Source: Scyliorhinus canicula
Taxonomy: Eukaryota
Assembly: GCF_902713615.1 (NCBI RefSeq)
Contig: NC_052149.1
Location: 153,760,379 to 153,824,378, forward strand
Direction of reading: 5' to 3'
Length of the DNA: 64,000 nucleotides
Part shown: positions 21,649-62,854 of the stretch, piece by piece
Position numbering within the stretch: the stretch's first letter is position 1
How the letters are laid out: every line of letters starts with the position of its first letter
The notes under the pieces: model-generated
Databases searched by the model: none
Told to the model about the DNA's origin: nothing
The model's input: only the letters and a program-made list of their open reading frames with translations
Position numbers and translations under genes: made by a program

Positions 21649-22313
21649 GTGAGTTTGCAGCACTATAGAAATAAAACACGGACAATTTCTGAATGAAGTT
21701 GAATTTGCACTAGGTGTGGTGAAGAGAGCAAGCTTCTTTTTTAATTACTTAGTAATACATACTGCCCAAATAGTATACTGATCGAGTAGCCTATTCTGGG
21801 ACCAGCGAGATACATTGCATGAGGGGGTCAGCTTACTGGCCGTTATAACTAATGAAAGGGCCCTGTTAGACTGGAGACCAATGTTTCCAGACGTTAAGCT
21901 AGCAAAAACAGCGTTCTTTATCAGAATGACTGGAAAACATCATGAATGGTAAAGTGTGCATTTTAGGGATTCACTGTCTCTCTTTTTGTTCGATGGATCT
22001 TTGTTACAAAGCACTTGCATTTCATCCCTTTATGGATGTCTTGTATTTTCCAATCAATACCTTGTTGAAAAACAATTGCTGGAGTACATGAGGTACATAA
22101 AACATTATTTCTTTGCAAAAAGCTGATCATATTAGCTGGTGAGAGGAAAGTGCAGTTTGCACTTCACTTTCTATTTTTGAGTACTAGTGCTACCAGTAAG
22201 TGTGGACTCAGTAGAGAGGTAAATTAAAAAGGGGTGTGCATTTTTTGTTGCTTCTGGCCGCTCCTGGGACATTTGAAAGGTCAGGCATCAAACAGCATTG
22301 GAAGCATTCTCGC

Positions 22314-22548
22314 CCTTTTTTAAAAAATATAAATTAAGAGTACCCAATTAATTTTTTCCATTTAAGGGGCAATTTACTGTGGCCAACCCACCTGGACTGC
22401 ACATCTTTGGGTTGTGGGGGTGAAACCCACGCAAACACAGGTAGAATGTGGAAACTCCACACGGACAGTGACCCAGAGCTGGGATCGAACCTGGGACCTC
22501 GGCGCCATGAGGCAGCAGGGCTAATCCACTGTGCTACCGTGCTGCCCC
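22314..22548 (-). mobile_element. Short A-tailed V-SINE
   Basis: Head, shortened V-domain and aattgggtactct..T/A tail. TSD TTCTCGCCCT / TTCTAGCCCT. Confidence 0.9.
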
Positions 22549-23290
22549 TTTTCTAGCCCTTGATCATGTAGGAGTATTGTGTGCCTGGTGCTGGTTGCTC
22601 CTAAACAGAGCAAAACTGGCACTCAAGTGTTTTGCCCTGATTATAGCTTTTTTGGCAGAATGTGCTCCCCAAACTGTCCATAATAGAAGAGACCTTAAGG
22701 TGGTTCTGTTGATTGATCCCAAAGCAACCGCTACTTTACTGTTTTGGAGAGAAGAATTATTTTGAGATTCTGGTTTACCAGATATTTTTGAATGTGCGGG
22801 GAGTCTCATTGACGATATTTACTGATGTCAGTGCAAGGGAGTGGATGAATTGGTTGAGCTGTCAGGGAAGGGTTGCCAAGTCTGCATTCAGTTATATATG
22901 TAAGTTCAATACGCTTGGGTGGTGAGACTCTGATCGTTTGCACCTAGCTGCATGTGAACCTTGCTGGTCGATACAAGGTGGCCCCATATCTCAAATTTAA
23001 ACATTTTCTCTGATGTGGCTTTATTTCTGGGTCATGGGTGTCAGCTATAAATACTAATAAATACACGCAATATCATAGAATTTTGTGACGCTTCAAGGCC
23101 AATTTCTGTGGCAAGCAAATGTAGATTCTGCAACAGGCAGTGTTTCAAATGCTAATTTGGAGTGAATTAATGCTGACAGTTGCAATTCCAGCCCAACCAG
23201 GCAAAGAATTGATTAGCTCTTCTAGCCTGAACTGTAGCTGTTTTATTTCGAACTTTGCTATACTGTATCAGTAGTCTTGTCCCATATTTT

Positions 23291-23395
23291 CCCGAACAGG
23301 CGCCGGAATGTGGCGACTAGGGGCGTTTCACAGTAACTTCATTTGAAGCCTACTTGTGACAATAAGCGATTTTCATTTCATTTCATTTCATTTCA
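23291..23395 (+). mobile_element. 5'-truncated SINE/LINE tail ending in (CATTT)n
   Basis: cccgaacaggcgccggaatgtggcgactagggg...gtgacaataagcgattttcatttcatttc. Confidence 0.75.
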
Positions 23396-24119
23396 GCTAG
23401 AAATTGATTTCTTTTTTTAAGAGTCAAGGGCCTGGCCCCAAACGTTTCCCGCCAGTTAGGTTTTCAAAAGCTTAGTTGCAGCAAAACACATTTATTGATT
23501 ACACTCCACTCCCTAATAAGGCCATATAACCGGTCCATTTTGTGGGATGTTTTTCAAACTCTTTTTTCCCAGGATGCACTTTTAACAACCGGCTGACCTT
23601 TGGGATCCATACCAGCCAACCTATGCGACGCACAATTTTTGCTTAGCTTTAATGCCACAGATGAGCATGCTTGGTCCACACATTCTCACTTGCTTTGGCA
23701 CTCTATTATTTTTCTGCTAAGGACTGCAACTGATTATTAAAGATGCCGCTGCATCCTTTGAAAAAAAATCAAGAGGTCTGTCCTTAAACTTGCCATGCTT
23801 AGTCTTCAAATGCTTTTGAAGTTTGGAGGGGTTTAAACTCTCTCTTCCAGTACTTACCTGCATATAACGCACACATGGGCTTTGGATCCTGAATTGCATT
23901 GGCACAATTAGCAAACCCATAACTCAAGAAATCATCCTTACATTGCTTTGTTCCTGATTTCAGATTTTTCTTTGTTTAAAACGACCCATCTTCAGTTCTT
24001 CACAGTCCTGTTTCCTTGCTTGCTCGCAGATGGAAAATGGAGGGCTCGCCCCACCATGATTTCATGCCAAAAGCATGGACATACAAGGCACACAATGTCC
24101 GTGTGCGTGCCCTGCTGTC

Positions 24120-60304: not shown

Positions 60305-60474
60305 CATTACGCACCATAAATGAGTTAGTAATGCTGAGGAAGTTGGAAGAAAATCAGAATGTAAAATACTCTTTTTTTTTTAAAAAGAAGAAAAATGGCA
60401 GAAGTGAATGAGGGAAACTACTGAATGGAGAAAGCCAACACAATGGGTATTAATTTGTAAATATTCAAAAACCG

Positions 60475-62498
60475 TGCAGTGCTGGCCCAAGGCATCCGAG
60501 GACATCCTCCGCGACTGCTTGGAGTCTGTGGACTGGTCCATATTAAAGGCCGCGGCAGCTAACCTTTGATGAGTACACAACCACTGTCACAGACTTCATC
60601 AGTAAGTTTGTCGAGGGCTGTGTACCAAAGAAGACAATACGGGTATTCCCCAATCGAAAACCCTGGCTCAACCAAAAGGTTCACTCCCTGCTGAAGTTCC
60701 GGAAGGAGGCGTTCAAGTCCGACGACCCTGACCGACATAAGAAATCCAGCTATGATTGATGGACCGATCAGGGATGCCAAAAGACAATACCGCATCAAAC
60801 TAGAGTCCCAGGCCAACGACACAAACTCACGACTACTATGGCAGGGCTGACACAAGATCACAGGCTACAAAGCAAGGCCAGGCAGAGTATCTGGGGCTAG
60901 AGCATCCCTCCCCGATGAACTGAACAAGCAGTCAGCCAATTCATCACTGCCACCCGCCCCAACAGCCCTGGACACAGCCATACCCACTATTACAGCCTCA
61001 GAGGTATGAGCTACATTCTTGAAAGCGATGGGCCCCGACAGAGTCCCTGGGCAAGCATTCAGAGCCTGCGCAGACCAGCTGGTATTCGTAGACATCTTCA
61101 ACACCTCACTCTGAGGTCCCCACCTCCTCCAGGAAGACCACCAAAGAAGGACAACTTAGCCTGCCTCAAAAACTACCGACCGATGTCCCTGAAGTCTGTT
61201 ATCATGAAATGCTTCAAGCAGCTTGTCATGAGACGGATCAACGGCAGCCTCCCAGATGGTCTCGATCCATTGCAGTTCGCCCATCACTGCAACCGGTCCA
61301 CAGCAGATGCTATCTCCCTGGCTCTACAATCAACACTCGAACACCTCGACAACAAGAACACCTATGTGAGACTGCTGTTCATAGACTACAGCTCTGCGTT
61401 CAACACCGTTATCCCGACGACGACATAACCAAACACTGCAATCTTGGACTTGACCCGTCCCTGTGCAGCTGGATCCTTGACTTCCTCACCAACAGACCAC
61501 AATCTGTCAGGATAAGCAACAGCACCTCCTCCACATTAGTCCTCAACACCGGGGCCTCGCGAGGATGTATGCTCAGTCCTCTACTATACTCCCTATACAC
61601 ACAACTGTGCGGCAAGATTTAACTCCAACTCAATCTATAAGTTTGCAGATGATACGACTGTGGTGGGTTGTATCTCAAACAATAACGAATCAGACTACAG
61701 AAGGGCGATAAATCACTTGGTTGCATGGTGTACCGAAAACAACCTCTCCAAATGTCGGAAAGACCAAGGAACTGATCATCGACTTCAGGAAGCATAGCAC
61801 GACAACCCCGTCCCCGGTCTTCATCAATGGCTCTGATAGCTTTATGCTCCTGGGGGTCACCATCGGCAACCGTCTGTCCTGGCCCACTCACAGTGATGCA
61901 ACAACGTCTCTACTTCCAACGGCAGCTGAAGAAATTCGGCATGTCTGCATCGACTCTCACAAACTTCTACAGATATACCTCAGTGATCATCCTATCCGGC
62001 TGCAACACAGCTTGGAATGGCAACTGCTCGATCGCTAGAAACTGCAGTGTGGTGAACTCAGCCCAACGCATCATACAAGCTTGCCACCTGCACATTGATT
62101 CTGTCTACACCTCCTGCTACCTCAGGAAGGCAGACAGTATTATCAGAGACCCCTCCCACCCAGGCTTTATCCTCTTCCAGATCCTTCCATCAGGTAGAAG
62201 ATACAGAAGTCTGAAGATCCGCACATTCAGACATAGGAACAGGTTCTTTCCTACAGCTACTAGACTCCTCAACGACTCACCCTCGGACTAATCTGTTCCC
62301 TGTAAGCACTAATCACAACGTCCTATACTGCTCTTGCTCATGTATTTGCTTTGTTTGGCCCCTTGTTCCACACTGTAACCAATCACTTTATCAATGTACT
62401 TTGTCGCTTATTCTTTTTTTGACTCCTGCGTTCCTTTGGCCGCAGAAAATACTTTTCGCTGAACTTCGGTACATGTGAAATAAATCAAATCCAATCAA
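60475..62498 (+). mobile_element. Rex1/Babar LINE, 5'-truncated and decayed
   Basis: [45 protein letters not shown] and LPSGRRYRS, with tail aataaatcaaatccaatc. Confidence 0.88.
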
Positions 62499-62577
62499 CA
62501 TGGGTGCATTTTCTGTGATCAACTTCATAATCATCAGATTTATAATCCAAATATTCTTCATTTCCACATAATGTAGA

Positions 62578-62800
62578 TTTAAAAAAAAAAATTTAGAGTA
62601 CCTAATTCATTTTTTCCAATTAAGGGGCAGTTTAGCGTGGCCAATCCACCTACCTGCACATCTTTGGGTTGTGGGGGCGAAACCCATGCAAACACGGGAG
62701 AATGTGCAAACTCCACAAGGACAGTGACACACAGCCAGGATCGAACCTGCGACCTCAGCGCCGTGAGGCAGCAGTGCTAACTACTGCACGACCGTGCTGT
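62578..62800 (-). mobile_element. Short A-tailed V-SINE
   Basis: TSD CACATAATGTAGATTT / CACATAATACAGATTT. Confidence 0.9.
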
Positions 62801-62854
62801 TCACATAATACAGATTTAAACCGAAATTATGCTTGGAGGCGAAATCAGAATTTG

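Follow-up and report, generated by a model that had tools for sequence, protein, structure and literature searches.

A short, A/T-ended V-SINE branch with long target-site duplications in the shark Scyliorhinus canicula

The V-SINEs, a group of short interspersed elements (SINEs), are said to form a superfamily with exchangeable tails (reportedly the work of Ogiwara et al. in 2002), and the pairing of the SINE HE1 with the long interspersed element (LINE) HER1 reportedly goes back to Ogiwara et al. in 1999. This work describes V-SINE/HE1-like copies in a 64-kb stretch of the Scyliorhinus canicula genome (GCF_902713615.1, contig NC_052149.1, positions 153,760,379 to 153,824,378; the whole stretch is referred to here as the window), among them a short branch that has no LINE-like tail and is flanked by long target-site duplications (TSDs). 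The HE1 SINE of sharks and rays consists of a tRNA-type head, a V domain, and a 3' tail held in common with HER1, a LINE of the CR1 clade (PMC3747384, table 1). The long copies in the window fit this account in head, V domain, and CR1-type tail, an assignment made by description and not by alignment to a published HE1 sequence. The short copies depart from it: they are without that tail, carry an 18-nt deletion in the V domain, end in A/T runs, and have long TSDs.

For SINEs with conserved domains, change of LINE partner and mosaic evolution are the accepted model (MetaSINEs, PMC4824008; bivalve HCD SINEs, PMC11481361). The window conforms to this model in that one core is joined to several LINE-derived tails; the published cases, however, exchange one LINE tail for another, whereas the short branch apparently has no tail that derives from a LINE. 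Recognition by L1 of the relaxed type, through poly(A), has been seen as a speciality of mammals and plants (PMC7245038, PMC3747384). The short branch resembles the L1-dependent SINEs of mammals (Alu, B1, and B2) and the poly(A) SINEs of flowering plants in that LINE homology is confined to the A-rich end (PMC3747384, PMC7245038), as well as in its TSDs of variable length (approximately 7 to 20 bp in those systems) and its T-rich/A-rich targets. It differs from them in its host, a cartilaginous fish, and in its very short ends, in which a T run often precedes the A run; mobilization by L1 is here a reading of the sequence. B2-type (T+) SINEs place AATAAA and a TCTTT-type terminator just before the A tail (PMC8466645), and no consistent arrangement of this kind is present in the short class. 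Another point of comparison is provided by the RTE-related Au-like and Sauria SINEs, which likewise have short T- or A/T-rich ends and TSDs of approximately 10 to 15 bp (PMC6007223). The TSDs of RTE-related retroposons have T as their first base, about 10 nt past a T stretch (PMC6007223), whereas five of six TSDs in the window start with A directly after a T-containing dinucleotide.

Among the SINE/LINE pairs tabulated in a review, no SINE of a nonmammalian vertebrate has an L1 partner, and nearly all the pairs described from such animals are based on a structured 3' tail held in common (PMC3747384). Our literature search found no description of an A/T-ended shark V-SINE; the library searched was limited and did not extend to Repbase or Dfam, and novelty is not shown thereby. 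The best-supported mechanism for the short branch, to which we give somewhat better than even chances, is that, the CR1 tail having been lost, L1-clade machinery copied the branch by way of its A-rich end.

Three 3' modules on one V-SINE core

A BLAST search of the window with one short copy as the query retrieved 16 V-SINE/HE1-like copies. Three tail classes (short, long, and third-tail) can be distinguished among them, and a head with A and B boxes and a V region are common to these classes. Copies of the three classes align with one another across the V region, a central domain of ∼80 nt whose assignment is based on comparison among the window copies, with no reference V-SINE sequence in the alignment. 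One head-plus-V core carries three different 3' modules. Of the modular lineage with three tails and three LINE machineries that had originally been predicted from this DNA, the three 3' modules, the sharing of the CR1 tail, and the distinct footprint of the short class are borne out, but the short tail matches no LINE in the window.

The short class comprises seven copies, defined in the alignment by their own head substitutions, the V-domain deletion, and a common end. The short copies are not truncated versions of young long elements. The LINE-like tail is absent from the class, and the element stops soon after the V domain. Its ends were set by eye from the seven copies, and the copy S59959 was left out of later alignments. 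In the consensus of all seven copies, the A box reads TGGCACAGTGG and the B box reads GGTTCGATCCC. ARAGORN called no tRNA for the SINE head, and Rfam gave no tRNA match within positions 22000 to 27000; judged by its boxes, the head appears to be of RNA polymerase III type, with putative tRNA ancestry.

Six of the seven short copies end in an A/T-rich motif of 19 nt followed by a short T/A run. A scan of the window for this motif gave seven matches within three mismatches, compared to 0.04 expected. For S48461, the match is an internal look-alike segment, and the copy itself ends in T11 A4. Overall, the ends of the short copies are mixed T/A runs (T0-11 plus A0-10) with no long poly(A). The signals AATAAA and ATTAAA are absent from the consensus of the short tail, ATTAAA being found in S52790 only, and RNA folding of the last 80 nt of the short copies was no better than that of shuffled sequences (z from -0.6 to +0.9). 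The seven copies and their shortened V domain had been recognized in the original prediction, which extended the motif to all seven and called the branch A-tailed; the motif is confined to six, and the name, while correct in that the ends are A-rich, is generous for runs that are short and mixed with T.

The tail-specific part of the short class was matched by BLAST only in SINE copies within the window and in no LINE there. Local alignment of the short tails to three L1 3' untranslated regions (3'UTRs) from the window, evaluated with shuffles, revealed no similarity other than in the A/T run at the end (p≥0.02 in 18 tests, without correction). In a MAFFT alignment, the 19-nt motif falls opposite the part of the long-copy body that directly follows the V region. 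The motif also resembles a segment ∼40 nt upstream of it, with 14 of 19 positions identical on the consensus (a hand count) and 11 to 13 of 19 in single copies, and the same upstream position gave the best match in four of five short copies (e.g., 62581-62640, minus strand). The short tail may therefore be derived from the SINE itself by internal duplication and not from a LINE, a suggestion based on these modest sequence resemblances. An 18-mer of the short tail was found at 26 loci in metagenome contigs, none of which contained the SINE, all being chance matches; V-SINEs were likewise absent from four contigs holding homologs of the L1 reverse transcriptase (RT).

Target-site duplications of the short copies and of a local L1

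A single procedure was used to evaluate TSDs in every copy: the 30 nt preceding the head were matched without gaps to the 45 nt following the tail, and the best match was compared to those of 500 random flanks. Six of the seven short copies have TSDs, of 11, 13, 14, 14, 14, and 16 bp, each with p≤0.004 and one of them a perfect 14-mer. The longest, at S62578, reaches 19 bp if the preceding TTT is counted. TSDs of 9 to 16 bp had been predicted for all seven copies; this holds, at 11 to 16 bp and with one perfect duplication (14 bp), for six, while S48461 is ambiguous, its best flank match being 16 bp with four mismatches (p=0.14). No TSD was detected in the five testable long copies (nothing beyond 6 to 7 bp, p from 0.04 to 0.6) or in the two third-tail copies (nothing beyond 6 to 7 bp). 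The contrast between the short copies (6/7) and the others (0/7) is significant (Fisher p=0.0047). Equal TSDs in all tail classes, or a short tail matching the 3' end of a non-L1 LINE, had been named in the original prediction as outcomes contrary to it; the TSDs differ, and no LINE match to the short tail was found within the 64-kb window.

Independent of the SINE annotation, a blind scan starting from every A run of at least 6 nt recovered four SINE copies (S52790, S54641, and S57672 by their TSDs) and the L1 element L1a, while an equal number of random positions gave 0 to 1 matches. Across the whole window, A runs of this length number 27 on the plus strand and 60 on the minus strand. T stands at position -2, ahead of the TSD, in five of the six short copies and in L1a; in this small sample, the target has the form TT/ (the slash marking the start of the TSD) in three of six short copies, and the first base of the TSD is A in five of six. 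Such variation in TSD length is consistent with target-primed reverse transcription, but not with a DNA transposon. The flanks of the short copies do not show the RTE signature, in which the TSD begins with T some 10 nt past a T stretch. The GC content of the flanks is ∼0.41 for short copies and ∼0.46 for long copies, a sample too small to use.

L1a is a 5'-truncated LINE whose RT matches human LINE-1 ORF2p with an E value of 3e-76, compared to 7e-18 for R2. Database homologs of the L1 RT combine Exo_endo_phos and RVT_1 domains and are at most 53% identical to it. The 3' end of L1a reads AATAAA..T6 A7, and the element is flanked by a perfect 15-bp TSD (9001-9015 and 6563-6577) at the target TT/GAAT. 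By its RT match, A-tailed end, and long TSD, the LINE at 6578-9000 belongs to the L1 clade. The footprint of the short class matches that of L1a, the one L1 copy in the window whose TSD is readable: its A7 tail, 15-bp TSD, and TT/ target are alike in kind to those of the short copies.

CR1-tailed copies, third-tail copies, and other features of the window

The long class consists of the copies at 17898, 26051, 44544, 11587, 38116, and 10711, plus one at 43884 that is cut off at its 3' end. Long copies continue for ∼150 nt past the V region and have at their end a segment of ∼50 nt, after which comes a repeat of the ATTCTAT type. The same ∼50-nt tail closes CR1-like LINE 3' ends that have no SINE head (Table 1), and its predicted fold is a strong hairpin of about -30 kcal/mol (z about -3 relative to shuffles). 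The original prediction that long copies end in a CR1/HER1-like tail and have no long TSDs is thereby confirmed, the tail being found in CR1-like LINE ends and no TSD in the five testable copies.

The CR1-tailed copies also place the short branch in time. Short copies lie 9 to 17% from their consensus, with a mean pairwise identity of 78%. The corresponding identities of the CR1-tailed copies are 71% for an older group and 88% for a younger group, the three best copies reaching 90 to 95%. Because CR1-tailed groups both older and younger than the short copies exist, the short branch is an old offshoot: the partnership with CR1 both preceded and outlasted it, and the two coexisted without replacement. 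The earlier wording that the lineage "switched to L1" was overstated, as CR1-tailed copies younger than the short branch are also present. One young CR1-tailed copy, L26051, lies in the RT region of the L1 element L1c (24124-26625) with no detectable TSD; tblastn mapping shows L1 ORF2 residues resuming on either side of it. CR1-type SINE activity therefore took place after the insertion of L1c. Just upstream of another long copy, L11587, positions 11425-11600 hold an L1 ORF2-like piece of ∼130 bp with no 3' end, flanked by a 17-bp direct repeat.

The third tail is found in the copies at 49507 and 56495, which are 76% alike in it by BLAST; the structure predicted for it is moderate (z=-2.1). 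It had been predicted to end in (ATT)n; the tail is indeed present in both copies, but (ATT)n closes only the one at 56495. It is also found at the end of a non-V SINE that has a different tRNA-like head (3762-3900, minus strand, and 23277-23400, plus strand), where it ends in (ATTTC)n. Because the third tail occurs on V-SINE and non-V SINE alike, it represents one LINE-type tail common to two SINE families.

In addition to L1a, the window contains the L1 elements L1b and L1c, whose 3' ends show an order of signal, T-rich segment, and A run akin to that of L1a. The three L1 3'UTRs are otherwise unlike each other. For L1c, no TSD was found and the 5' end is not defined; a TSD candidate for L1b was rejected, as it lies within that element's own open reading frame (ORF). 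The region around L1b is complex: its 5' end is abutted by a further L1 piece (15013-15672, minus strand) that has a separate poly-G tract and ends in an A run, giving two L1 copies head to tail. Every L1 3'UTR in the window opens with a run of 15 to 28 G soon after the ORF2 stop (6660-6683, 12396-12432, 24265-24292, and 15031-15051, minus strand), reminiscent of the poly-G tract that the L1 3'UTRs of all mammals are reported to have (PMC5381506).

All but one of the seven short SINEs lie on the minus strand, opposite to the strand of a putative KDM3B exon; the ORF of this putative exon gave only distant protein matches (at most 37% identical). A second ORF, at 46524-47195 on the plus strand, encodes Integrase_H2C2 and rve domains and is a fragment of a long-terminal-repeat-type retroelement.

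Table 1. Positions and characteristics of SINE and LINE features in the window
Feature	Span (element)	Strand	Characteristics
S22314, short copy with TSDs	22307-22561 (22318-22550)	-	11-bp TSD, 1 mismatch, 22551-22561 and 22307-22317, p=0.004; motif with 1 mismatch, then T6 A4-6; 9.0% from subfamily consensus
S48461, short copy	48446-48692 (about 48461-48677)	+	Short-class head and V-domain deletion, no terminal motif; oldest short copy, 16.7% from consensus
S52790, short copy with TSDs	52776-52994 (52790-52980)	-	Perfect 14-bp TSD, 52981-52994 and 52776-52789, p=0.002; internal deletions; A-rich tail
S54641, short copy with TSDs	54631-54875 (54645-54861)	-	14-bp TSD, 1 mismatch, p=0.002; motif, then A6-10
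S57672, short copy with TSDs	57663-57913 (57676-57900)	-	13-bp TSD, 1 mismatch, p=0.004; target TT/AAAT; tail end TTTATTT A3-6
S59959, short copy with TSDs	59945-60202 (59959-60188)	-	14-bp TSD, 1 mismatch, p=0.004; motif, then A8 T
S62578, short copy with TSDs	62565-62817 (62581-62801)	-	16-bp TSD, 2 mismatches, p<0.002
L17898, long copy	17898-18250	-	Full CR1-type tail, ATTCTAT-type repeat end; 6-bp flank match, 1 mismatch, p=0.49; hairpin z=-3.3
L26051, long copy	26053-26410	+	No TSD, p=0.60; tail hairpin z=-3.0; inserted in L1c ORF2
L44544, long copy	44544-44893	-	6-bp match overlapping tail repeat, p=0.036; tail hairpin z=-3.0
L11587, long copy, older	11590-11890	+	No TSD, p=0.18
L38116, long copy, older	38116-38432	-	No TSD, p=0.49; head like short-class head
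T49507, third-tail copy	49507-49803	-	Ends in AATAAAGAATG, no (ATT)n; 6-bp flank match, p=0.07
T56495, third-tail copy	56495-56795	-	Ends in (ATT)3; no TSD, p=0.44; tail fold z=-2.1
CR1-like LINE 3' end	33794-34000	-	BLAST of long tail, and sequence; same hairpin-forming end, no SINE head
CR1-like LINE 3' end	4300-4614	+	Same tail, no SINE head
CR1-like LINE 3' end	27290-27440	-	Same tail, no SINE head
L1a, 5'-truncated, with TSDs	6563-9015 (6578-9000)	-	RVT_1 E=1.7e-37, weak zf-RVT match
L1b	12205-15012	-	ORF2 segments; poly-G tract in 3'UTR; 3' end GATAAAATATTTTCTAAAGAAAA
L1c, split by L26051	24124-26625	-	ORF2 segments by tblastn; 3' end ATTAAA..TTTATTT A7

Candidate machineries for the short branch

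Under copying by L1-clade machinery, recognition of short-branch transcripts would, as in mammals and plants, depend on their A-rich end and not on a stem-loop specific to a LINE. An L1-clade endonuclease would make staggered nicks, at which the transcripts would be reverse-transcribed with priming on the A-rich 3' end. The long and third-tail classes would have kept partners that depend on a stem-loop, one CR1-like and the other a different LINE. We infer that L1 proteins were probably the copier of the short branch and that their recognition of it was probably relaxed.

Several considerations weigh against this mechanism. The basis is small: a single 64-kb window that holds seven short copies, which are old, and one TSD of an L1. 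The end of S62578 is T11 followed by at most three A, and two further short copies have T6 to T11 before the A run. Neither long TSDs nor A-rich ends are peculiar to L1. The blind A-run scan revealed no other A-tailed retrocopies in the window and no independent sign of L1 trans-mobilization there. The target-site counts were made post hoc, and the tendency of TSDs to start with A is biased by extension of the match into the A run. In addition, the 19-nt motif could be present in a LINE outside the window, and nonmammalian L1 elements are thought to require a 3' structure besides poly(A) (PMC7245038).

Two alternatives place the partner of the short branch outside the window. According to one, which we consider unlikely, the short class is mobilized by a non-L1 LINE (e.g., RTE, L2, or another clade) that ends in the 19-nt motif or in an A/T-rich terminus. 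Nearly all described SINE/LINE pairs of nonmammalian vertebrates do have a common tail (PMC3747384), and the good conservation of the motif in six of seven copies is what would be expected of a recognition site. Within 64 kb, however, the motif never occurs outside SINE copies, while the other two tails are each found repeatedly where there is no V-SINE head; the short tail forms no stem-loop and may stem from the SINE's own body. TSDs of 10 to 15 bp are known from other LINE clades as well (PMC6007223), but the RTE-type target pattern is absent here. The other alternative, which we rate as slightly less likely still, is a sequence-specific L1 partner, i.e., an L1 family that has its last 20 to 60 nt in common with the short SINE. 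Two SINE copies end in runs similar to those that close L1a and L1c (T6 A6-7 and TTTATTT A6-7, respectively), although the similarity to the three window L1 3'UTRs, which are themselves mutually different, is not significant beyond low-complexity A/T runs. Stringent L1/SINE pairs are known from maize, tobacco, and Chlamydomonas (plants and algae; PMC3747384), and the 3' structure thought to be needed by nonmammalian L1 (PMC7245038) would also favor such a pair, yet no structure is predicted in the SINE tail.

It is highly improbable that the long flanking repeats and their difference between classes arose by chance or as an artifact of boundary setting. Boundaries were indeed drawn by eye from seven copies, one of which (S48461) is without a clear TSD; against this, the remaining six each reach p≤0.004 relative to 500 random flanks, with one perfect 14-mer among them, and the blind scan from A runs recovers SINE copies and L1a where random positions yield 0 to 1 matches.

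The broader significance of the short branch is reduced by the facts that partner change is already the accepted model and that the branch is old and marks no lasting switch. We put forward tentatively, and with rather less than even confidence, that an L1 lineage of cartilaginous fishes mobilizes templates by their A-rich 3' end alone, that this constitutes relaxed SINE trans-mobilization in an early-branching vertebrate, and that the V-SINE core can survive dropping its LINE tail. Should this be true, the presence of three tails on one core within a single genome would offer a natural test case for the effect of the tail on TSD length and target choice, and relaxed L1 recognition would be older, or would have arisen more often, than its standing as a speciality of mammals and plants implies.

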